Below, piece by piece: positions 49,501 to 62,412 of a stretch of DNA of 64,000 nt. Under the pieces are notes generated by a model. It did not search any database and was not told the origin of the DNA. It was given only the letters and a program-made list of their open reading frames with translations. Position numbers and translations under genes: made by a program. The stretch is from Saccostrea echinata (lineage: Eukaryota): contig NW_026889803.1 of the NCBI RefSeq assembly GCF_033153115.1, positions 43,090,001-43,154,000 of the forward strand, given 5' to 3'. The number at the start of each line of letters is the position of its first letter. Position 1 is the stretch's first letter.

Positions 49501-50561
49501 CAACTAATATATTAACATTGCAGCAAATTAAAAGTCTACCTGGATTTAAAATTGCAAAAATGGCTACACTTCAGAAAAGGATCCAACGTTATTTGTGATT
49601 TTCTGTTGCTTGCCATCAAAAAGTAATGATATAGTACAATTTCCTAATCAATTTAAAAGGTCACACTTCGAAAATCCCTAGAAATAGTGACAACTCCTGC
49701 AGACACCTGACAGCTAGTTTGGCTGAAATTCTGTAGACTTTGGAAAATTAATTCTGTCATACTACTTTCTTTCAAGTTGTACAAATGTATAGTCATTTAT
49801 CATGTGTCATCTGACTAAACATGGTGGGAAATGATGTATAACCAGTGAAGGAAAAAATGCAGTGGACCAGTCCAGGATTCGCACCCACAACCCCTGAATC
49901 ACTAGTTAAGTGCTCTACCAACTGAGCTATCTGGCTACCAGTGATTGAACCTGTCTGGCCGCCACACTTCGATCTTCTCTCCCGAAGACACCAAGCCAGG
50001 CTCTTCCCTGGAAGGTCTTTCACCTGTCACTTCCAGGGAAAGTTCAAGACACAAAAAATAATGGACAAGGGAGAAAAATGAGGTGGACTAGACCATTGAA
50101 TTTTTATCTCTTGCCCATCTCAGATGAAACTTCAATATTTCCTTTGAAAAAATTAAGTCAAAATTTATTTGATATTATTATTAATATGTGGTGGAAGTGC
50201 TCACGTGGGATAGATTATAACTGTGACTATGCTGACATTAATTTTTTATCCAGATTGCAGAAGAGTAACATACCCAGACACACCAAACCTCTGTGGTCAA
50301 AATATGGAACATATTCCAATGCACAGTGTCATAAGGAAGGGTCATGTTGATCCCCTCCCGTGAGTCTGTCAACACTTCATCATCTTCCACTGGTTCAACG
50401 GTCACTCCATGAGCTCCATCCCCCAAATCAACTGTGAGAGTGTCAAAAGTGGACACCATATGATATGCATAGTATAATGCCACTGACAGAACGAGGACAG
50501 AAACTGACGTGTAAGTCTGTAAACTTGGAAGGGGTATCCTCTCCAGTAGGATTACCGGCAT
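10596..50561 (-). CDS. AMFR: E3 ubiquitin-protein ligase AMFR/gp78 (multi-pass ER membrane, RING-H2, CUE, G2BR, VIM); 13 coding exons, ~661 aa
   Basis: Hand-assembled exons on the minus strand: 50561-50274, 47935-47843, 45835-45671, 45079-44886, 43821-43689, 43467-43334, 42973-42863, 23337-23156, 22800-22691, 16362-16237, 14038-13854, 12643-12539, 10755-10596. Total 1986 nt, all GT-AG, phases consistent. Recognisable gp78 peptides: HLKDKFWNFLFYKFIFIFGVLNVQ; RING CAVCWERMEGARKLPCGHLFHN|SCLRSWLEQDTSCPTC; CUE ARQVQSVFPHIP...TIENILEGR; G2BR FSKSASERETMLQSRKEQMLQNARKKYL; C-terminal p97-binding VIM RRELAFQAAQRR. Exon 14038-13854 encodes a low-complexity linker and is the least certain. Confidence 0.95.
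14487..15255. mobile_element. MITE with 5-bp TSD, inserted in an older tandem-repeat element (~14150-15590)
   Basis: TIR CAGGGGTGTGCAATTA / TAATTGCACACCCCTG; AACTA on both sides. Flanks carry repeated tatcttagtatag...gaaattggaccaaaactg...aagaatttc units. Confidence 0.8.
17960..19860. mobile_element. Probable non-autonomous repeat with many GTTGCCATGGTAAC-type palindromes
   Basis: At least six copies of the motif (18247, 18604, 18771, 18946, 19529, 19703); boundaries approximate, class uncertain. Confidence 0.4.
24604..24793 (+). promoter_or_regulatory. Possible TATA box and non-coding first exon of the nested giant gene
   Basis: TATAAA at 24604-24609, donor-like GAG|GTATAT at 24791/24792, candidate acceptors at 25261 and 25381 before ATG 25409. 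Motif-level evidence only. Confidence 0.3.
25409..38876 (+). CDS. Uncharacterised ~2823-aa, largely low-complexity protein with RS repeats and four CCCH zinc fingers, nested antisense in AMFR intron 7
   Basis: join(25409..25823,30820..38876). ATG 25409 (gagATGG) has an in-frame TAA upstream at 25388. The donor G|GTATGT at 25823/25824 is phase 1, and the acceptor tttttcctttttag|AT at 30819/30820 restores the frame into the 2674-aa ORF. The 8057-nt stop-free exon cannot arise by chance in AT-rich DNA. The first exon is inferred from phase match only. Confidence 0.85.
25983..26340. mobile_element. hAT-type MITE in the intron of the nested gene
   Basis: TIR CAGTGTTTGAAA; perfect 8-bp TSD TTTACCAG (25975-25982, 26341-26348). 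Confidence 0.85.
26370..26422. repeat. 53-bp palindrome
   Basis: aattagaggataatgacactataaaa-t-ttttatagtgtcattatcctctaatt. Confidence 0.85.
30345..30726. mobile_element. pogo/Tigger-like MITE
   Basis: TA|CAGTTGAACTTTGTTATCTCAAAC ... GTTTGAGATAACAAGGTTTGACTG|TA. Confidence 0.65.
35259..35426 (+). repeat. Coding 21-bp tandem repeat giving eight RSPxxR(S/T/H/K) heptads
   Basis: RSPPYRT RSPFQRH RSPFHRS RSPMHRS RSPLPRS RSPIHRS RSPMTRS RSPEYRK. Confidence 0.9.
36408..36702 (+). repeat. Coding ~63-bp minisatellite (about 4.7 copies of SSEKEEKQMATDNIMNITKEK)
   Basis: Visible at both DNA and protein level; one copy has an in-frame 3-bp deletion. Confidence 0.9.
38916..40528. mobile_element. Tc2-like (Tc1/mariner superfamily) non-autonomous element, 1.6 kb
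   Basis: TA|CCGTATTTGGCTGAATATAATACGCA ... TGCGTATTATATTTGGCCAAATACGG|TA; internal direct repeat ggggtgcgtattttacacca near both ends; no transposase ORF. Confidence 0.8.
40745..40932. repeat. Degenerate palindromic MITE-like element
   Basis: Arms attatggacttcag...tgtcaagtgatattgacc / ggtcaatatcacttgaca...ctgaagtccataat. Confidence 0.6.
41492..42301. mobile_element. hAT-type MITE (810 bp)
   Basis: TIR TAGTGATGGG/CCCATCACTA; perfect 8-bp TSD CTTGATGG (41484-41491, 42302-42309). Confidence 0.85.
44475..44822. mobile_element. Two adjacent pogo/Tigger-like MITEs (44475-44639, 44652-44822)
   Basis: Each is TA|CA(G/C)T..AACCTTGTTATCTC ... TCAACTG|TA; same family as 30345-30726. Confidence 0.65.
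45229..45670 (-). repeat. ~30-bp minisatellite (~15 copies) built from the AMFR exon 3 splice donor
   Basis: Unit on the minus strand is ~GTAAGTCACACAGGTGTTAGATTGGAAAAT; the first GTAAGT (45670-45665) is the real donor. Confidence 0.9.
45929..47245. mobile_element. Helentron-associated (HINE-like) element with ~150-170-bp satellite array
   Basis: Begins aacaagaggcccaagggcc; repeated gaagattttcaaagaattaatgc...ttcactat...ccagaacccct...ttcacaattttggaaga units, resembling oyster satellite monomers from recall (not aligned). Confidence 0.55.
47250..47686 (-). mobile_element. Fragment of HINE-like element, same family as 60370-61142
   Basis: Reverse complement reads ttttttatgccctgccatgaatatggc...gtttgtcatgtccgtc, matching the start at 60372. 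Confidence 0.6.
48034..48864 (-). mobile_element. 5'-truncated L1/Tx1-like LINE with poly(A) tail and 12-bp TSD
   Basis: Open frame 48864-48415 with the ORF2 C-terminal CCHC finger CLFCKANTESQKHLFFEC and the WSIWKTRN motif. AATAAA at 48075-48070, A-tail 48065-48032, TSD ACTTAGAATATT at 48022-48033 and 48865-48876. Confidence 0.88.
49863..49935 (-). mobile_element. Degenerate tRNA-derived SINE head
   Basis: Minus strand GCCAGATAGCTCAGTTGGTAGAGCAC...GGTGCGAATCCTGGACTGGTCCA: intact A box, mutated B box, poorly paired anticodon stem. Confidence 0.6.
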
Positions 50562-50920
50562 AATTAATAGTTTACTAAATCCAAGAAATTGTCCTTATAG
50601 AAATACAGTCGGCTGAAACTGCGTTACAACCTAAAAGGTGTTTACTTTTTTTCTTTCATGGTTGACAATGACGAAACTTCCGGGAGTTTTCGAATGTATG
50701 GAAGAACGCTCCAGACATAAAATGCGATTATAGAAATGTTTCAACGCCTAAATTTAACGTTGTGACTTACTGGTACTCATCAAATTTTGTATTTAAAAAA
50801 TCTAAATGCCATACAAAGGCTAAAACGTGTTAAAGTAGGTGATGAAATGCCAAAAATGTTAAAGGTTCCATGTGCTATAAAGTTCTAGTGTCGAAACGTC
50901 GTGCAACCGTTTTTACTTTC
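50562..50920. promoter_or_regulatory. Putative bidirectional promoter region between AMFR and SDR39U1
   Basis: Divergent start codons at 50561 (-) and 50921 (+), 359 bp apart; ETS-type ACTTCCGG at 50676-50683; locally more CpG than the flanking introns. Confidence 0.7.
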
Positions 50921-53900
50921 ATGATGGCACCGCTGAAAATCCTAGTTGGTAGGTTTTTGGTATTTTCTTTAGCTGTCTCGCAACTCAAGTTGCAGATATA
51001 TTACTAATTTTTTATGTTAAGATGTAGTTAAGCAAAAAATCCCACCATAGCATTGTCATTGATCATAATTTAAAAGATGCGCTTAATCCGAGATTCCTCT
51101 AACTCTCACTCGCCTTTAGGCCTAGTTTATCATGTGTTTACAGCTGCTAAATTTTGACATGCAAGGGGATAATCAGTCTGACTCACTCGGCACATGACAA
51201 AATATTAAGCTGTAAAAAAGACAGAGGAATTTCGGGTTTTGCACTCATCAGCTACATAAAGTGATAAAAAGAGGGTAGCTGATGTTACAGTTTTATTCTG
51301 AATTTCTAATGTTTCTATGGTTAATATTTGTATTGCAGTTAAAATGATATATTTACATTCCACATGTATTTTGCTTATGAAGTGTGTGGAAAGTATATGG
51401 CACCTCATTTAAATCACCATAACACAGACGGGGGTCAAAAGGTTAAAGGGCCTGGACACAGTTGCATTCTGTTTACATTTTAAATTTATATGCCTATTCA
51501 AAAAATAAAACCAGTTAAATGAATTGAACTTACATGAATAATCTTAGAATTCAATGACAACAACATTCTTCTTTACATCACGTCAAACATTTGTTTTTGT
51601 AAACAAGCTCTGTTATTGTTAATGTTTACGTTTGCACACATCACTGTGCATGGACTAACAATACTGGTGAGTTGGTTTTGCTTTCTCACATTTTTACTCT
51701 GAGTTTTCTGGATTATGGTTTTAATATTTTTCATTAATACACAGCAAAATTTCTACTTTTCCAAACTATTAAGTAGCAATCAAACATGTCCCGAAATTCG
51801 TAGTTTCAATAATTTCCAGATAAAGGAAGTTTCTGAACACGCTTATATTATATTTCTGTGTGAAATGCTGTTGCAACATATAAGTCATGATATTATACAG
51901 AAAATTTGAGAAAATATAATTTCAAATCTGTGTCCAGGCCCCTTTAAAGTATAATTTTTATTTTATAATTTTGATGTCGCAAATGTTGAAGGCTCTGCAA
52001 CATCATAAGTAAACTGCAACATCATAAGCAAAAATCAAAATTCATGCTGTCATTGAACAGTTAAATGGTAATAGCTGATGGAATGGATTTTCCATCAATT
52101 GTAACTTACCTGAAGAATAATACAGTGAGGGATATTGAATTAATTATATAAAAACATTTGCAGACAAGGCAGGGAGTTAAAATATGTAAATTGATACACT
52201 CTTCAGAAAAAGGAATGTGTCGTAATTTTTTTTTGTCGGTTTCTGCACCACATCCTTCAGGTATAAAAGTGCTATCAAAAGCTGGAGTTCTCTATATTTT
52301 GATTCTGTTTTATTTGTCTCTGAAAATTGACACTACATATATTTAAAAATGCTGAATCTGAATGTTGCATATCACAAAAAGGAAATTGAGCAACTGGAAG
52401 CAGGTGTACCACAGTCTACATTTGCAAGAGGTTTTAAATTAATCTTGCATAAATATAGGATCTCCCATGATTTGTAGTTGGATATGATTTTTATGCAACG
52501 AGTTGTGTGTTTTTATCCTCGAGCCTTGGCAAGGGGATAAATACACACAATGAGTTGTATAAAAATCATATCCAGCTACAAATCATGGGAGATTCTTTTT
52601 ATCCCTTGTTTTATGCATCACTATCAATATTTTACACCATTTTATACATGAATCCACTTTATTTTACTTCATCACTTTCACGCAAAACCCATTGTGATGT
52701 CACAGCAGTGGGATATGAAAAAAATATCTATTGAGTGATATCCATGGGATAAGGGGTAAACATGGGGTAAAGCACCATATTATCTAACCTATGAAACAGA
52801 TACCAATATGGTACAGCAAATGATCGCCAAAAATATGGCAGGCCATGCGTGACATCAGCAGCACAGGGTCGCTTCAGTGGTTTGCATATTTTTCATCAAT
52901 GTTTCACAATAATGTCATCTACAGCATTAGCTATCTCTGAAGTGCACAGAATATCTAACAAGACCCTTTGCAATTGAATATATATGGGATTCTGGAATTA
53001 TCACCAGATCGAGGACTTATTTATGCCATTGTTCTGACCCCACAACACAACAAAATATCAACTTCAAAGGTCTCAGACCAAAAGAGTATGGCCACAGCAA
53101 CACCGCTGAACAGTTTGGTTTAGATACTATATGTTTATTGCAAAGCCTGATGTAAGAGTGCATAAGCTTTCTAATGAATGTTTTACAAAAAAATGCCTCC
53201 GGGAAGTTGATAGATTTAGTGGTGGTAGTGTAATGATGTGGAAATCTGTATTATATACAAGTAGGACAGATTTGGTTCATATTCAAAGGACTTTGATGGA
53301 AAACTGTACTCTTACGACGTCCTACCTGCACATGTCTTTCCAATAATGCAGCATCCTGGAGCCATATTTCAGTCTGGCAATACATGGTCAAATACTGCTT
53401 GTTTGACAATCGCATTCGTGCAAAGCCAGAGCATCCTGTTCTGCCTTGGCCATCTAAATTGCCAGATTTAAACCCCATTGAATATGCATTGGAAAAAATG
53501 GATAGGCATATACACCAAAGATAATCACATCCCCAAGCTCTGTAACAGCTAATAAAAGCACTACATTTAGAGTGGGATAGCATTCTCATACAGTTTTTAT
53601 TCACTCATTTGCATCCATTGGGATGACGTTTTAGGCTATCATTGGTGTGAGCAGGGGGCATACCAGATATAGACCTTTAATGACCTTAACTTGAACTGTC
53701 TATGATATTGTAAAATTTTTGAGTAATTATAACATTTAGGTTGTAGACCTATTGTTTACCACATTTCTTTATTATCAATAAATCATTCTACTAAATAATT
53801 TTTATGTTCAATGTGACACTACAATTTTACTATACGTTTTCTTTTTTCGAAGAGTTTATAATAAGCCATTGAATCATTATTTTTTGAAAGATGAAGTCTC

Positions 53901-56900
53901 ATAACTGCTACTGTGTGTGCAAACAAATTTTCATGATGCGCTAATGAATGTTACTCAATTTTTTGGCAATATTGTTAAAAGCAGTATTTTTATGGTAATA
54001 TGTGCTGATTGCTTCATCATTTATAATGCCATAACACAGTTGGGGAGGTCAAAAGATTAAGTAATGATTTTTAACTCACCTCAAGGAAGTTGGGGGGAGC
54101 TTAATATGTAATATATGTACCCTCAGCGTCAGCATCCCAGGTTAAAGTTTTTGGAGCAGTTTTCTTTTTAAGTACTTCTGTGCCCTACATTAATCAGAGA
54201 TGCATGGAAGGTTTTCCCTATCTGTTGCATAAATTTGCCATGACTGTGAAAGGGAAAGGCAAAAAAGAGAATTGCAAAAAGAATATATTTAATATCTAAT
54301 TATGATTTTTCAGACTATTCTTAGGTATGTTTGTTTCAGATTTATGTAAATCTGACCCAAAAATTTAAAGAAACTCTACTAGTTTCCTGTGTTATATATG
54401 AAGACTTAGTCAGCTGTGAGACCTAAGGTAAGTTTGTATGCAAGTCGGTTAACCTATCACAGATTGCCATCCCTAATATAAAGACAATCCTATTCGTTAT
54501 CTAGAATTTGATTCTTTTACTAAAACCAGTGGTATAGTGTAAATGCATCTTGTATATGAAATTCCAATCAGCTATTAACTTTTTAACAAGATTAAGCCTA
54601 AAACTTTGTTTTTGAAAAAGAGCTGGGCAACTTTTTCCAGATTAATTTTTTGTAGATATCATTGTTTATTTCTAAAATTTATAGATGAAAGATTATAATT
54701 AAAGTTTCAACAAATTTAACAGTAATCAAAGAATGTTTTTCAGTGTATCATCCAAGTATATCTTGAGAGAAATTTTGCTTTTTTGTAGAGAATAAAATGG
54801 CCTCTGATCTTTTGATGGGTGCCATTCACAACAAAGACTTGCTGTCTGTCAAAAAAATCTATGAGATGGAGACAAGAGAAGATAATTTCTTCTCACTGGA
54901 CTCCATCAACAGGGAAGAACAGATGACCCCTCTGTGCTTGGCAGCAAAACTTGGAAATAAGGAGATAGTGGAGTTTCTCCTGCAAACTGGGGCCAAACCA
55001 AATATTGCATGCACGTGTGTCCACAGAAACAAAGCTGCTTTGCATTTTGCTTGTGAACACTGTCATGCTGATTCAGCTCAAATTGTGCAACTTCTGATAA
55101 ATGCTGGTGCTAATGTGGAGCAAGAAACTTTTGATTTTGAGAAAGCACTGCATTTTGCATGTGAATTCAACAACCTGCCAGTTGTGGAATGTCTAGTGGT
55201 GAGTGGGGCTGATATTAACTGTGTCAATTTAGATGGAAAATCACCTTTGTCCTTAGCTTGTTCAAGAAAAAAACACCCAAGAACTCTGTCCATAATCAAA
55301 TTTTTAATTGATAATGGAGCAGATACTAATAACTCAGATGGAATGCAGAATATCAACCCAGTCAGATTGCTTATTCAAAACAAAAACATAGAGGGCGTTC
55401 ATTACTTGATTGACAAGCAGCTTTTACCTCAAGATGAGGATTTTTTAACAGATGCTGTATTGACCTCATATCCAGAAATGGTGAAAGTCTTGATAGATCA
55501 ACAAATTGAAATCAACGAATCTTCCTCCCTGTTTCAGTTGACTGCCCTCCATCAAGCATGCATGTCCCCTGTGGTCAGCCCAGAGATTGTGGAAATATTA
55601 CTGATGCATGGTGCTAATCCAGATGTTAAGAGCAAGTTAAAAGATACTCCTCTTCATTATGCATGCCAAAAAGGAAATGTCCATAAGGTGGTGTTGTTGC
55701 TCAAATATGGTGCAACCATTAACAATTCTAATAAGCATGGATTTACTCCACTTGATGCTTGTTTTGTGAAATCAAGTTGTACAAGTGATAAGAAGCTGTT
55801 GATTATGAAATGTTTTGTGTTTGCGGGGCTAAAAGTTGACAATGCCTTACAACAAAAAATGTCCAGATTTAAAGATCACATAGATCCAGTAGAATTCACC
55901 TTGATAGACAGTCAGCTAGCTACTTACTTGAAGGCTCCGATGAGTCTTTTGAGTATATGCAGGATTTTTATAAGGCAGAGAATAAATTTGCACAACCAGA
56001 ATATCCAAGGCATGTTGTCACAGGAACTACCTTCTGCTGTTTGTGAATTTCTACAGTTTTCTGATTTGTTGTCTTTGTGTGAAAAAGACCAAGACTGAAT
56101 GTAGAAATGATAAATATTTATGAACTTTTTTTGTCCCAGTATTATCATTTCAAAGTGGTTGCATATCCATAATATTTGTTGTAATTTGGAATTTGATGCT
56201 TATTTATTATTAGAGCTCATCAAGATGCAGGTGTCCTATAGGAATCACCTATCTGTCTGTCAACACTTGTATCTGACATAAGAACTGGAGTAACACTGCA
56301 TGTTTACTATGTGTGTGTGTGTGGGGGGGGGGGGGATTAGAGGAGGAAACTACCTGTATTGACCAGTTGGTCAAAGGTCAAAAGTAAACTACATAAATTG
56401 TACTGGTTGTTTTTATTATCATTCCTACAAAGGTAGAGAGTGGTTGATGGAAGACATCTGGACTTTTTGGAGTCACTTAATTGGTCTAAGGTCAAAGCTA
56501 AAGATTATCAAAATGACCAGTGTGATGCAATGATATGGACATTTTGTAGCCTGTAGATTTCATATGTAGTATAAATGGAAAATGGTTAGAGGAAGACTTT
56601 TAAGTCACTTCTCAAAGGTCAAGGTCACTGATTGAGATTAAAATGTGTGATGCAATAACTAATCCTACAGGTTTTAATTTACTTCAGGAATGCTTTGAAA
56701 AGAATCACTTGGTCAAAGGTCAGAATTGTTCTCAAATAACCAGTGTGATGCAATAACAGGAATAGTTTTACAACTGAAAATCTTTTTTTATAACTACATA
56801 TTATATATGAAGATTTGTTAAAAGGAGAAGAAATTTCTTGAATAAGGTCAAAAGTTAGACTATTTAAATGGGTGTTATATAAGAGATGCAGTTGCTGAAA

Positions 56901-59900
56901 AATTTGGTATTTTTGAAGCTAATGAAAACATTTTTACTACATGTACATAGGTGAACAATGACTTTGAGTTAATTCTTTCAACGGTCAACATTAAAGTGGT
57001 TTATCTTCATGACCACAGATTATGTGGTACAAATTTTGAGTATAATTCAGAATGCAAAAAAATATTCACACCACAATTAAAAAGACTATTATATATACAT
57101 TCTATATGGCCAATTGTTCAAAGGACAATGTCAAAATCTTAGATTATTGATACCTAATATAAGCATACCGTTTGACTTTGTTAGTTTTCTAGTTTTAATT
57201 TCACCTGAGCAAAGAGGCTCAAGCGAGTTTTTCTAATTGAAAAGTGTCTGACCTGTCTTTTCATCATGTATAGTCTGTACACTTTCACTTCTTTCGACTT
57301 CTTCTCCAGAGCAACTGGACCAAATTCAACCAATCTTATCACAAAGCATCCTTTAATGGTTAAGGTGATTGAAGATTCTTCAAATGAAAGTCCATGCCCT
57401 CTTTCAAGGGGAGATAATTAAGAATTTTTGAAAATTTAATGGCATCTAATTCAAGAACCACGTACAGGACCAGAATGATGAAACTTTTGTGAAAGCTTCA
57501 TTATCTAGTGTAGAGTCAACTTTGTTCAAAACATGACCCCGAGGGGTAGGTTGGGGCCACAATGGGAGATCACATGTATGTAGGAAAAATGTTGTTCTCA
57601 AGATTAAGTGTTTTAAAGAATCTTATTAAAAAAGCTATGATTAGTCATATTATTTGGAAGCATCCTCAAGAAGTGTAGATTCAAGTTTATTCAAAACTTG
57701 ACCCCTCGGGGTAGGGTGGGGCCACAACAAGGGATCAAAGTTTTACATAGAAATATGAAGGAAAAAATCTTAAAAATCTTCTTCTCAAGAACAGCAAAGC
57801 TATGATCATGATGATTAGTAATATTTGTATGGAAGCATCCTCTGGTTGTGTAGATTCAAATTTGATCAAATCATGACCGTTTGAGATAGAATGGAGCCAC
57901 AATATGTGATCAAAGTTTTACTTAGGAATATATCAGAAAAAATCTGCTGCTGCTGAAGAACAGTAGATACGGCCTTAGGAACTCATTTAAGCATAGTGGC
58001 CCATTGGCCTGTTGTTATTATTATATTTAGTGTTGTCATTTCTAATTCTGGAGTATACTGCAAAAAAAAAAAAAAAAACTTCAAAGAATGTTTATGTATT
58101 ATAAAGTATAGGCAGTACATTTATGACTTTGTTGAAGGAAATTAATTTGTATTTAGATATTCTATTTATCTTAAGTACAAGTAGAATTGATATCTATTGT
58201 TTGATTAAGGATTGTTTTTTTCCCCTCAGTTATTAAACTGTTGATTTTCAAACATAATTATTTATTTTGATTTATTATATTAACTTTAATTGTCTATAGT
58301 ACAACTTTCTCCTGGTGCAAAAGCCATTTATACAATATCTGTGTACTGGAAGGGGAAGGGGGGATAGTGACTGCATGACCTGTGCATGCATCATATCCAC
58401 ACCATGTATCCATACTTATGCTTGCTTCAGAGGTCATGACATGCTAAGTTGCAAGAGGAATAAACCAGAAGATGTGTCAAAGGTCAAGGTCAGAGGAATA
58501 ATGGATTATGAACATGTAGTAGTTACAAATTAGGAGGTTCATGTAAAAGATGCACAAACAAAGGAGGGTGTTATGGTGGAATATTATATGCAGGTTATTT
58601 TTCTACAGATTTAATCCAAGATAATTATGTCATATATCAACATGCAACATAACTATGTTGATCTTCATGCAAGAAAAATGTAATCAGATAGGAATTTTCA
58701 AATATTGCCCTTCAAGCATACTAGATACAACTTATTTATGTTGGCAAACAAGCAATTTTATGTTGACATGCAACTTATTATCATCTATTATAAACCTGAA
58801 ATGATTTTCTTCTTAAGCGGGCTCCAGTGGATTTGTGGGACGAAATCTTGTTCGACTGTTGTCTAGATCAGAATGTGAAATCATACAGCTAAACAGACGA
58901 AGTAAACCCTCTCGAAGCAAATTAAGCAAAGAAATCACTTGGGTAAGGTCTGTTTATTTATCAGATTTTTGTTTTGGATTAATAGTATTATTTTTATGCT
59001 TGAATTCTAAAATGTAAATAATGATAAGCATAATTATAACTGTACATAGCCCCCCCTTTCCTCTTAAAAAAAGGAGGATGTTGCATGTAAGCATTGATTT
59101 CTTTGGAAGAGTGTTGGCCACTCTTGATTAGAAAGACATATTTCTGTTTTTGTTGCTTTTTCAATGTGCATGTGAACCATGTATTCTGTTTTGTTTTTGA
59201 AATACAGAGTGAGGTGAATGACAATGGATTTCCAAGTGATCTAGATGTCCTCGTAAACTGTTGTGGTTACAACATTCTGAATCCATTTAAGAGGTAATTC
59301 TTCTTCTTTGCCATTTCAGTCTTTGAAGGGTAAAAACCTATTTCTGAAGTCTCGTATATCTCACTTCCTTGATTCTGCATGACATATTACATGATGAAAT
59401 TGAGTTGCCATTTAAAGGCATTGGGACAGGTGAATTTCAAGAAATTTCAATTTCTGCCTTGACCAAACTTAACGACCCTCTATACATAATGAAAAAGTTT
59501 TTGGACATTGAGAAAATTAAATTGTAAAAAGGTGTAAATATTGAGTTGATCTCTTTCATTTTCAGCATAGGTTTATCTACCATTTACAGATTTACCCCCA
59601 GGAAAAATGAAACTTTAATGTCATTTCTGATAGCAGCATTAAGATTTTTATCTTTATGATTATTTTAATTTTGCAGGTTCAATGCTGAATATAAAGAGCA
59701 AGTGGAGTCTAGTCGTATAGAGACGTCTAAAATATTATCTCAGTATTGTGATACTACTCCTCGCACTCCCAAAGCTTTCATCAGTATGTCTGGAGTAGGT
59801 ACGCAAATAAAAGCTTCTGTGGTATTCCTCCAGTTATACACATGTGCTTCAAATACATGTTGTTTGAAAGCATTATTTCAAATGGAAATTAGAATGTTGA

Positions 59901-62412
59901 CATTTCCTTAATATTTTACAAATTTAAAGAATATAATTACATTTTTAAAAAGAAAGTTTATATTAAATACCGGTAAAATCCATTTTAAATCTAGGTGCAA
60001 ATAATAAAATTGGTAAACTACAGAAAATTTGGGACTGGCTTCACAAAAAAATTGAACTTTGTAAAATTGCTTTCACTGGCGTATTTTGTTACTTTTTTTT
60101 CCAGCCATATATAAGCCTGACCCAGTCAAAGAATACACCGAAGATTCCCCGGTACAGCCGTATGATTACATGTCAAACCTCGTCAAAGACTGGGAGTTAG
60201 CGGCCAAAATTCATGCAGACACAGAGAAAAAATGCCGACAGGTCATTTTACGATCAGGTTAGTATCAGTGAGTTGCTCAAGGGATCACTGAATATTTTCT
60301 ATAAAAAGGAAATTGTAATTAGAGACTATGTTTGGAATTGATAGTTATTATGAAACACACAAAAATTAACATTTTTATGCCCCACCATGAATATGGCCGG
60401 GGCATATAGTGTTTGTCATGTCTGTCTACCGCCCTTCCGTAATACTTTGCATTTAGCTCAGTTTCAAAGAAACTATTCAAGATATTTTTATCAAACCATA
60501 TATGCTGATACATACTGGTAAGGACTATTCAACTTCTTCAACATTTTTGACCTTGACCTCACTTTTCTTAAATTAGTTTTTAGCAAAGTTTCAAAGAAAC
60601 AAATGAAGATATTTTTATAAAACCGTATAAGCTGATACTTACTGGTGAGTTCTATTCAACTTCATCAACATTTTTTTACCTTGACCTTTCCTTTGACTTC
60701 GACTTCACTTTTCTTAAATTTGTGTTTAGCTAAGTTTCATAGAAACAAATGAAGATATAATTATCAAACTTTATATGCTGATACACATTAGAAGAGTTAT
60801 TCAAGTTCATCACTTTTTTGTCCTTGACCTTTCCTTTGACCTTGACCTAACTTTTTTCAAATTTGTGTGTAGCTCAGTTTCAAAGAAATTATTCTAGATA
60901 ATTTTTATGTAAGCCTGTGCACTAATAAATTATTTGTTGAGAATTTATCAACTGTGTCCAAATTTTTTACCTTGACCTTCCCAATGACCTTTGACTTTAC
61001 TATTTATTGTGTATAAAACTCAGTTTTAAAGAAACTATTCAAGATATTTTCATCAAACTTCATGCACTTACACAAATTTTCATATTTCATTACTAATGAA
61101 CCCTGGGCGGGGGCATTCATTCCCTATGCACATATTTCTAGTCCTTTTTAAATTCAACCTTTAGAGCACAGGCACTTGACATTTTAAACCTTTCTCTTTA
61201 TTGATAAAATATCCCCATACTATATTAGTATGGGGATATTTTTATCAATAAAGAGAAAGGTTAAAACTTCAAGTGCCTGTGCTTTAGAGAGAAATATACA
61301 GAAATAGTAATTTTTTTAATCTTATTTTTACCTTACTGTCATTTAGCAAAAAATCTGAGTAGGTACATGTTTACAAGTATTGATAAGGGCCCAGCATGAA
61401 AATGCAGGAGCCCTAAAGGAATCACATTGTCTGTCCATCTGTTTTTTCTGTAAACACTTTTGTTGTGACGAGTTTTAAATGATATGCTTTCAAATTTTGT
61501 ACGTAACTACTTTACTGTAAGAGCAAGACACCTACAAAGTTTAGGGTCATATCACTTGTTTGTCTATACATGTGTTTGAAGGTATATCGTGGACTTTTTT
61601 GTGACTTGATAACTTGACAGTTTTCAACATAACATTTTCACATTTTACACAGAAGAACTTTACTATAAGAGAAAGGCCATTATAATTTAAGTGTCATTTC
61701 ATTTTGTCTGTATGTACATATGTATGCCTGAATGTACATCTTGTTAGTCCTTTAACAGCCCTTAGCAGGCCCTCTCTGACTATGTCAGTTCTCTTGTTTC
61801 TGATAATTTGAGAAATCAGAATAAATTGGAGCAAACATTACCAAGTAGAGAAGAATGTAGCTTGTCAGACAATATGCTGAAGAAAAATTGATCAATACTT
61901 AAATATACATGTATTGGCTTGCACTGTCACTATATTATCATTGATTAAGTTAATCCAGTCGTCTATGGTGCCTCTAAAATAAAGCTCTTGCTCTCTTTAC
62001 AGGAGTAGTTTTAGGACGAGATGGTGGTTTGATACAAAACCAGTACTGGCAGTTTTACTTTGGTTTAGGTGGCCCCATTGGTAAAGGAACACAATGGTTA
62101 CCATGGATTCATGTGGACGATGTTGCTAGTTTAATTCATTTCTCTATTTTCAATGATCATGTTCGGGGTATATTAAATGCTGTGGCTCCTGACACTGTCA
62201 CAAATGAACAATTTTCAAAGGCTTTTGGCGCTGCATTGGGACGTCCAGCAATTTTACCTACACCAGGTTTTGTCATGAACCTTGTTTTCGGAAGTGAACG
62301 TTCTGTGGTAGTTTTGGAGGGACAAAAAGTTATTCCCAAAAGAACTTTAGAAACAGGTTTTCAGTTTCGGTATCCAAAGGTACAAGATGCTTTGCGTCAG
62401 TGTGTTGGATGA
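50921..62412 (+). CDS. SDR39U1: Epimerase family protein SDR39U1 (atypical short-chain dehydrogenase/reductase); 6 exons, ~307 aa
   Basis: join(50921..50948,58818..58942,59208..59293,59677..59798,60105..60257,62003..62412) = 924 nt, phases consistent. Rossmann motif ILVAGSSGFVG spans exons 1-2. NILNPFKR, SSRIET, RQVILRSGVVLG, GLGGPIGKGTQWLPWIHVDD and LEGQKVIPKRTL match SDR39U1/YfcH-type proteins. Confidence 0.9.
51447..51943. mobile_element. Kolobok-like MITE
   Basis: TTAA|AGGGCCTGGACACAG ... CTGTGTCCAGGCCCCT|TTAA. Confidence 0.75.
52197..53856 (+). mobile_element. Decayed Tc1-like transposon (transposase pseudogene)
   Basis: TIR TA|CACTCTTCAGAAAAAG ... CTTTTTTCGAAGAGTT|TA. Broken transposase motifs IEQLEAGVPQSTFARGF, DRFSGGSVMMW..RTDLVHI, LPWPSKLPDLNPIEY and GHTRY-stop, with multiple stops and frameshifts. 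Confidence 0.8.
52459..52594. repeat. ~135-bp palindromic MITE core inserted in the Tc1 relic
   Basis: atctcccatgatttgtagttggatatgatttttat...gtgtg / cacac...ataaaaatcatatccagctacaaatcatgggagat. Confidence 0.75.
54797..56098 (+). CDS. Ankyrin repeat and SOCS box-containing (ASB-like) protein, 433 aa, single coding exon, nested in SDR39U1 intron 1
   Basis: Multiple ankyrin repeats (TPLCLAAKLGNKEIVEFLLQTGA, ALHFACEFNNLPVVECLVVSGADIN, TPLHYACQKGNVHKVVLLLKYGATIN). C-terminal SOCS box PMSLLSICRIFIRQRI...LPSAVCEFLQF. A strong acceptor ttttgcttttttgtag ends at 54788, 8 nt before the ATG. Confidence 0.88.
   Translation: MASDLLMGAIHNKDLLSVKKIYEMETREDNFFSLDSINREEQMTPLCLAAKLGNKEIVEFLLQTGAKPNIACTCVHRNKAALHFACEHCHADSAQIVQLLINAGANVEQETFDFEKALHFACEFNNLPVVECLVVSGADINCVNLDGKSPLSLACSRKKHPRTLSIIKFLIDNGADTNNSDGMQNINPVRLLIQNKNIEGVHYLIDKQLLPQDEDFLTDAVLTSYPEMVKVLIDQQIEINESSSLFQLTALHQACMSPVVSPEIVEILLMHGANPDVKSKLKDTPLHYACQKGNVHKVVLLLKYGATINNSNKHGFTPLDACFVKSSCTSDKKLLIMKCFVFAGLKVDNALQQKMSRFKDHIDPVEFTLIDSQLATYLKAPMSLLSICRIFIRQRINLHNQNIQGMLSQELPSAVCEFLQFSDLLSLCEKDQD
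57193..58014 (+). mobile_element. HINE/Helentron-like element with ~175-bp internal tandem repeats
   Basis: Start tcacctgagc...ggctcaag, end gtggcccattggcctgttgtt; three units gaagcatcct...gtgtagattcaa...tgaccc...ggggccacaa. Confidence 0.55.
60370..61142 (+). mobile_element. HINE/Helentron-like element with tgaccttga-rich tandem units
   Basis: Start tttttatgcccc, short GTCT microsatellite, repeated ctcagtttcaaagaaactattcaagatattttt units, end gggggcat...ttctagt. Confidence 0.55.
61167..61281. mobile_element. 115-bp hairpin MITE, hAT-type
   Basis: CACAGGCACTTGA...TCAAGTGCCTGTG, nearly fully palindromic; perfect 8-bp TSD CTTTAGAG. Confidence 0.85.

Follow-up and report, generated by a model that had tools for sequence, protein, structure and literature searches.

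A 64,000-nucleotide (nt) stretch of the Saccostrea echinata genome (contig NW_026889803.1, positions 43,090,001 to 43,154,000 of the forward strand; called here the window, in whose own numbering all positions are given) contains the gene for SDR39U1, an epimerase family protein. Inside its first intron, on the same strand, lies an open reading frame (ORF) for a protein resembling the ankyrin repeat and SOCS box (ASB) family. Our analysis indicates, with a probability of roughly 0.7, that the two belong to one complex transcription unit, in which a single promoter and first exon feed two unrelated proteins. The original prediction, made from the letters of the window, had proposed that the ASB-like gene uses the promoter and first exon of its host; this was borne out by assembled RNA contigs from two sequencing runs (X1 and X3), in which ASB transcripts carry SDR39U1 exon 1.

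The nested ORF and its joints to exon 1

SDR39U1 was recognised through two S. echinata RefSeq models, P0030 and P0179 ('epimerase family protein SDR39U1-like'), to which exons 2-6 of the window are 100% identical; both bear PF01370 (Epimerase) and PF08338 (DUF1731), and the family domains are thus read via these proteins. The conserved start is the ATG at 50921 (ATGATGGCA...), from which exon 1 reads MMAPLKILV + G and ends in phase 1 at 50948, at the donor site G/GTAGGT (GT at 50949-50950). Another in-frame ATG lies upstream, at 50870; P0179, isoform X1 of 324 amino acids (aa), starts there with MCYKVLVSKRRATVFTFMMAPLKILVAGSSG and then reads MMAPLKILVAGSSG, a reading shared by Saccostrea cucullata P0123. 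Exon 2 follows the acceptor ...CTTCTTAAG at 58818 and reads (G/CG) GSSGFVGRNL..., the Rossmann glycine motif; together the two exons read ...KILV-A-GSSGFVG, the N-terminal glycine-rich nucleotide-binding motif of SDR39U1. The passage from exon 1 to exon 2 is given as MMAPLKILVAGSSGFVG in the RefSeq models P0179 and P0123, and a transcript-derived Crassostrea gigas protein, P0180, reads MAPLKVLVAGSSGFVG. Judged by these three protein readings, exon 1 is part of SDR39U1; host transcripts that skip the nested block are implied by the same P0179, P0123 and P0180.

The nested coding sequence (54797-56098, plus strand) lies in intron 1 (50949-58817), between exons 1 and 2, and encodes 433 aa in one open frame. 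As in the ASB family, ankyrin repeats, which were strong (Pfam Ank_2, E = 4.3e-58; Ank, E = 1.7e-42), are combined with a C-terminal SOCS-box-like segment, and NCBI calls the C. gigas orthologue (XP_011429294) 'ankyrin repeat and SOCS box protein 13 isoform X1' (ASB13). The protein differs from the family in that the SOCS box (PF07525) stayed under the Pfam cut-off of 23.5 bits in all four oyster proteins scanned (13.6-21.9 bits). These were the window's own (17.9 bits for the whole protein, 21.9 bits for its last 72 aa) and P0002 (21.8 bits), P0015 (16.1) and P0124 (13.6), in which the segment lies at the same place. It differs also in that NCBI named the Crassostrea virginica orthologue 'ankyrin repeat domain-containing protein 61-like isoform X1' (ANKRD61-like). 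The relatives P0031 and P0036 (32-33% identity) exceeded the SOCS-box cut-off, with 34 bits. A PDB sequence search with the ASB-like protein returned generic ankyrin matches only and no information on the SOCS box, and the exact 433-aa protein was absent from a collection of 15 billion proteins.

Just upstream of the ORF is a strong acceptor (...TTTTTTGTAG/AG at 54788/54789). Joined to it, exon 1 reads G/AG AAT AAA ATG (E-N-K-M): the 8 nt between acceptor and ASB ATG hold no stop and are in frame with exon 1. In this direct form, and only there, ASB gains a 12-residue N-terminal extension, which makes the predicted product 445 aa long; it would begin MMAPLKILVENK. The frame match had been pointed out before, as an event with a one-in-three probability by chance, and it no longer rests on chance, since RNA contigs hold the junction. 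The ASB ATG at 54797 itself has an A at -3 and a G at +4. The other elements of the original prediction, namely the same-strand nested ORF, the phase of exon 1, the ASB acceptor and the AAG acceptor of exon 2, were likewise each present (Table 1).

A search of sequencing runs with the ASB exon as query listed 20 runs, four of which held at least half of the sampled words. Contigs of runs X1, X2, X3 and X5 were aligned to 50601-56600 (6000 letters, 30 bins) under a rule of at least 31 letters on each side of a joint; contig depth is not usable to rank isoforms or genes. The runs behave as RNA: in all four, depth was zero for seven of the 30 bins, which lie without exception in intron 1 (51001-51400, 52201-52400, 52801-53000, 53201-53800), and the ASB exon bins (54801-56200) were covered in every run. 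The remaining intronic depth came from short repeat-like pieces.

The longest ASB contig, record 6 of X1 (1542 letters, 4 other letters in 1427), runs from exon 1 through 54340-54427 to 54789-56213; 28 of its letters lie on exon 1, ending at 50948, and both joints are GT..AG. In record 18 of X3 (155 letters, 0 other letters), 54789 follows 50948 with no exon in between, also with GT..AG and with 21 letters on exon 1, and the 50948-54789 junction that had been put forward for a search in RNA is therefore present in one contig. The 54427-54789 joint recurred in record 26 of X5 (660 letters), with 13 unplaced letters 5' of the internal exon, here named E1b; X2 had no contig across the ASB 5' end. 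Inclusion of E1b was thus seen in two of the four runs (X1 and X5, from two separate studies with two different organism labels), and the direct join in one (X3).

One possible objection is that the exon 1 joints are artefacts of assembly or alignment at short contig ends, as the sides measure 21-28 letters, under the 31-letter rule, in contigs whose RNA label was guessed. However, two runs gave one donor with two acceptors and an exact GT..AG each time; with up to 2 mismatches allowed, the 923-Mb genome has just one match to the exon 1 28-mer (50921-50948), E1b too is single copy, and therefore the short sides do not stem from another locus. In addition, the sides share no 30-mer, so that a de Bruijn contig needs reads spanning the joint. 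We accepted the joints because two runs share one unique donor, exact canonical boundaries and two different acceptors, and an artefact appears very improbable.

E1b has a good acceptor (TTTGTTTCAG/AT) and a consensus donor (CTAAG/GTAAGT). In it the SDR39U1 frame continues as G/AT (D) and LCKSDPKI to a stop at 54363-54365, which makes an upstream ORF (uORF) of 18 codons (MMAPLKILV-D-LCKSDPKI-stop), and two more ATGs follow, each shortly before a stop. As E1b stops the SDR39U1 frame, ASB must start at its own ATG (54797) in this form, and the shared exon serves the longest ASB message that was assembled as a 5' leader with a uORF and not as shared coding sequence. The proposal of a shared first coding exon was therefore upheld in part: it applies to the direct form (X3) and fails for the E1b form (X1), whose frame ends after 18 codons, and shared coding is limited to the one, minor-looking, direct form. 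ASB transcripts beginning at a promoter or non-coding exon of their own, with no 50948-54789 junction, had been named as the finding that would speak against a shared exon; the non-coding exon that was found, E1b, is itself spliced to exon 1.

According to the reading of a single transcription unit, the exon 1 donor at 50948 would pair with 54340 (E1b, and then 54789), with 54789 directly, or with 58818. Inclusion of the ASB exon, with transcription or processing stopping in the 3' untranslated region (UTR) of that exon, would give ASB mRNA; where the whole nested block is skipped, SDR39U1 mRNA would result. In the E1b form the SDR39U1 AUG would open the 18-codon uORF, followed by the two tiny ones, and ASB would be translated from the AUG at 54797 by leaky scanning or reinitiation, whereas the direct form would yield the extended ASB. 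If the ASB 3' end is left unused, a cryptic GC donor at 56010 could be joined to exon 2, giving in-frame ASB-SDR39U1 fusions. The shared donor and the steps to the two mRNAs go only as far as the contigs show; those of translation and fusion are predictions.

Contigs of all four runs extend into the 3' UTR beyond the ASB stop, as far as 56165 (X3), 56213 (X1), 56282 (X2) and 56289 (X5), and further contigs cover 56348-56600 and beyond (X1) and 56378-56600 (X3). Between them, at 56303-56347, the contigs of all four runs are interrupted by a (TG)n tract with a G-run behind it; this segment probably lies in the ASB 3' UTR, and as the contigs break there, the message could not be traced to its 3' end. 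A scan for poly(A) signals found the first ATTAAA at 56637 and no AATAAA before 58459.

Table 1. Exons and splice features of the SDR39U1/ASB-like locus (window positions)
Feature	Position	Strand	Basis
Shared first exon, minimum extent	50870..50948	+	Sequence, translation; X1 and X3 contigs end on it at 50948
Internal exon E1b of ASB transcripts, 88 nt, new	54340..54427	+	Joints 50948 to 54340 (X1) and 54427 to 54789 (X1, X5), all GT..AG
ASB-like exon, 3' UTR covered at least to 56289	54789..56289	+	ORF, Pfam, RNA contigs
GC donor inside the ASB ORF, CCAAG/GCATGT, joined to SDR39U1 exon 2	56010..56011	+	X5 contig loose end; sequence
SDR39U1 exon 2	58818..58942	+	GSSGFVGRNL...KEITW; weak AAG acceptor
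SDR39U1 exon 3	59208..59293	+	tblastn of P0030, 100% identity; splice sites from sequence
SDR39U1 exon 4	59677..59798	+	tblastn, 100% to P0030; sequence
SDR39U1 exon 5	60105..60257	+	tblastn, 100% to P0030; sequence
SDR39U1 last coding exon, stop 62410-62412	62003..62412	+	tblastn; sequence

Orthologues and the question of a separate ASB promoter

ASB-like orthologues are 70-75% identical in Crassostrea and abundant among transcript-derived proteins, one cluster alone having 277 members. In C. gigas, where the orthologue carries the ASB13 isoform X1 name, the SDR39U1 proteins XP_011429295 and XP_019923359 are numbered 'isoform X2' and 'isoform X3'; the 37 cluster members read included no SDR39U1 X1, and the clusters read held no ASB13 X2. 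Going by names and accession order, the complementary isoform numbers and adjacent accessions suggest one NCBI gene with a shared exon. In C. virginica (P0133, ...FVDRK-M) the acceptor-to-ATG spacing is 8 nt without a stop, as in the window; the N-terminal extension MKSFFFHFVDRK... of P0133 and others is unspliced intron read into the ORF. Of two metagenome scans aimed at the JGI contig that encodes P0027, as a source of upstream sequence from a further oyster, one had no match and the other yielded two loci, unrelated or partial (L008, L009), which were left out of the comparison.

A different explanation for these data is that the nested ASB gene is independent, with an intron 1 promoter of its own, placed for instance immediately before E1b or 54789, and that the exon 1 contigs are minor splicing by-products. 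Host transcripts could be caught incidentally, given strong acceptors at 54340 and 54789 and a weak AAG at exon 2; X5 has only 13 unplaced letters before E1b and X2 no 5' contig; the transcript-called Crassostrea proteins begin at the ASB ATG, and RefSeq gives the C. virginica orthologue a separate ankyrin-protein name. Yet the sole full-length ASB contig, that of X1, begins in exon 1, a second run (X3) supplied an independent exon 1 joint, and in the contigs of the four runs neither a different 5' exon nor unspliced sequence was seen ahead of 54340 or 54789. Depth in X1 was about 1-2 units in bins 54401-54800, against 15.4 for the exon contig, and the C. gigas isoform numbering suggests a shared exon there too. 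We therefore consider an independent ASB gene unlikely.

Several points nevertheless weigh against a single transcription unit. The exon 1 sides of 28 and 21 letters fall below the 31-letter rule, so that they are not full bridges, and all the material consists of assembled contigs, labelled as RNA by a guess and carrying no abundance, 5' end or poly(A) site. No loose end at 50948 was present among the 24 of 44 contig loose ends that were listed. The canonical 50948-58818 junction is without a contig view, exon 2 being outside 50601-56600, and the bulk of ASB mRNA may come from an ASB-specific start near E1b or 54789. The assignment of the C. gigas isoforms to one gene was drawn from their names and accession order and not from a gene record. 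Finally, a MAPLK... start was absent from all 15 C. virginica cluster members listed (of 21) and from all 55 listed members of eight C. gigas-related clusters (in the first of these, 40 of the 277 members were read and 15 listed); the direct in-frame form is therefore not the usual source of the called Crassostrea proteins.

Fusions, origin and neighbouring features

Within the single transcription unit that we favour, enzyme and E3 adaptor had been expected to be mutually exclusive splice outcomes. This expectation does not hold strictly, in view of an X5 contig in which the ASB ORF is spliced in frame to exon 2 from the GC donor at 56010, and of fusion models in four oyster species (RefSeq, UniProt). 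The X5 loose end behind 56009 is identical (30/30) to the first 30 letters of exon 2 (58818-58847). The cassette thus delimited, 54789-56009, has 1221 nt or 407 codons and is in frame at both ends, and the cut falls inside the SOCS box, after ASB residue 404. Record 30 of the same run crosses 56009 unspliced into the 3' UTR; spliced and unspliced forms therefore coexist.

The RefSeq model P0030 (S. echinata 'SDR39U1-like isoform X2', 460 aa) is a fusion of another kind, made of ASB residues 1-163 and exon 2 onward. The same protein position is used by the models of S. cucullata (X3, P0121), C. angulata (X2, P0298) and C. gigas (UniProt K1R481, P0305). As a splice site of this genome the P0030 junction was rejected: it reads GAA/CTCTGT (A/CT), without a GT or GC. 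Crassostrea has Ser as the ASB residue at this point (...VRS LS...); an AGT codon for it could provide a GT donor, and the Saccostrea models may have been projected from Crassostrea evidence.

It could be argued from these models that the locus really makes one fused ankyrin-SDR39U1 protein of the 460-aa RefSeq type, and that separate ASB and SDR39U1 messages are partial, as P0030, P0121, P0298 and P0305 share the junction position and an in-frame joint of 56009 with exon 2 is present in X5. But the P0030 junction is non-canonical in the window, the lone fusion junction seen in RNA (56009) lies elsewhere, and contigs of all four runs pass the ASB stop into the 3' UTR. Among the best 120 proteins of the SDR39U1 search, ankyrin domains occurred only in the P0030 cluster, the others being SDR39U1 proteins of 261-333 aa. 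The fusions moreover lose the first Rossmann strand (KILV), and at 56009 the SOCS box is cut. A fused protein as the real product is accordingly hardly credible, and the fusions are probably minor by-products of the shared transcription unit.

A retro- or transposon-moved origin had been suggested for the ASB-like gene, and we rejected it, having found no close intron-containing parent in the 923-Mb genome. The gene is single copy, and its nearest paralogue (L003, G000:C25:5154233-5155375, minus strand) is 31% identical over residues 37-424 and is itself one open frame of 458 aa; the ankyrin/SOCS family of oysters may generally have single-exon coding regions. The 70-75% identity of the Crassostrea orthologues makes the gene older than the Saccostrea-Crassostrea split, and any insertion would therefore be old; marks of a retrocopy, such as a poly(A) remnant or target-site duplications, would probably be gone at such an age.

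S. cucullata SDR39U1 isoform X1 (P0122, MIDFKSKLGGSCKDALTKESVMVE...) has an alternative first exon, which maps just upstream of SDR39U1 exon 2, at 58527-58592 on the plus strand, but in two frames; a donor-like CAG/GTTATT follows at about 58593. The stretch may represent a second start of SDR39U1, lying beyond the ASB gene and non-coding or altered in S. echinata. In intron 1, many short high-depth contigs with loose ends at 51400-52000, 52440-52640 and 54100-54210 represent expressed dispersed repeats, and an inverted repeat at 52440-52600 has the appearance of a miniature inverted-repeat transposable element. An X2 contig skips the 1741 bases of 52126-53866 (52125 to 53867) with non-canonical TG..GC ends and a side of 25 letters; degraded transposase-like frames lie around 53200-53600 within the skipped part, which is probably a transposon insertion polymorphism or reflects a related copy elsewhere.

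Upstream of exon 1, a minus-strand ORF at 50238-50561, starting MPVILLERIPLPSLQTYTSV..., is a candidate first coding exon of AMFR. It resembles the N-terminus of vertebrate AMFR, an E3 ligase; a PDB search with this ORF gave no meaningful match. Its ATG and that of SDR39U1 are 360 bp apart in head-to-head orientation, and a bidirectional promoter is suggested by this. In 50601-50800, contig depth in X1 was 17.1. K1R481 (P0305), the old C. gigas fusion model, begins with ten residues (MVDNDETSGS) that match the plus-strand translation of 50658-50687 at 100% identity. This segment is either an exon of the ASB/SDR39U1 unit, conserved and still further upstream, or conserved AMFR 5' UTR or promoter mis-joined in K1R481.

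A wider scenario can be put together from these parts, in which the shared exon would act as a translational switch kept across oysters. Through splicing, one promoter would have three outputs, with the 18-codon uORF gating ASB when E1b is included, extended ASB when it is left out, and the enzyme when the block is skipped; this promoter, head to head with the AMFR-like exon (about 360 bp from ATG to ATG), would co-regulate ASB with AMFR and trade ASB off against SDR39U1. As a joint claim we regard this as doubtful.

Relation to known loci

In genes of the calcitonin/CGRP type, a common first coding part is followed by alternative 3' blocks with poly(A) sites of their own, an arrangement to which the direct joining of exon 1 to ASB corresponds. 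The products there are related peptide precursors of one gene, whereas in the oyster only 9 codons can be shared and the main assembled form shares no coding sequence.

The cholinergic ChAT/VAChT locus resembles the oyster locus in having a nested one-exon ORF in the first intron of its host, on the same strand, with a shared exon 1 and two unrelated proteins made by alternative splicing. Its shared exon is non-coding and its two products belong to one pathway (acetylcholine synthesis and packaging), whereas we know of no functional link between SDR39U1 and an ASB-type adaptor. In the oyster, the shared exon holds the host start codon and nine codons, and an extra 88-nt exon sets these codons as a uORF or an N-terminal extension. 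As stated in PMC7524744, exon 1 of the cholinergic locus is common to both genes, and the VAChT ORF lies in one exon within ChAT intron 1.

A further parallel is offered by CPNE1/RBM12 and more than 20 other human pairs, which, according to PMC2568002, share a promoter and their 5'-most exons and have unrelated coding sequences; the outcome is proposed there to depend on whether the shorter gene is polyadenylated or the transcript is spliced through to the longer gene. Table 1 of that paper includes fusions of adjacent genes as pair members, for example TNFSF12-TNFSF13 (PMC2568002), and the oyster ASB-SDR39U1 fusion transcripts are comparable to such pairs. The CPNE1/RBM12 type differs from the oyster locus in that its shared exons are described as 5' UTR exons, and in that the taxa are vertebrate and the genes are different ones.

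The arrangement is already known from these other loci (ChAT/VAChT, CPNE1/RBM12) and is not a new principle; a literature search, which did not extend to supplementary files, found no paper on SDR39U1 in oyster. The immediate value of the locus is an annotation correction for S. echinata, as the stand-alone ASB-like protein is missing from the searched collection and RefSeq has in its place a 460-aa fusion with a non-canonical junction. On the reading preferred here, it would add an invertebrate case outside the cholinergic locus in which two unrelated proteins come from one promoter and first exon, the host start codon included. It would also offer a small system for how acceptor choice, intronic 3'-end formation and uORFs split the output of a promoter between an enzyme and an E3-ligase adaptor.

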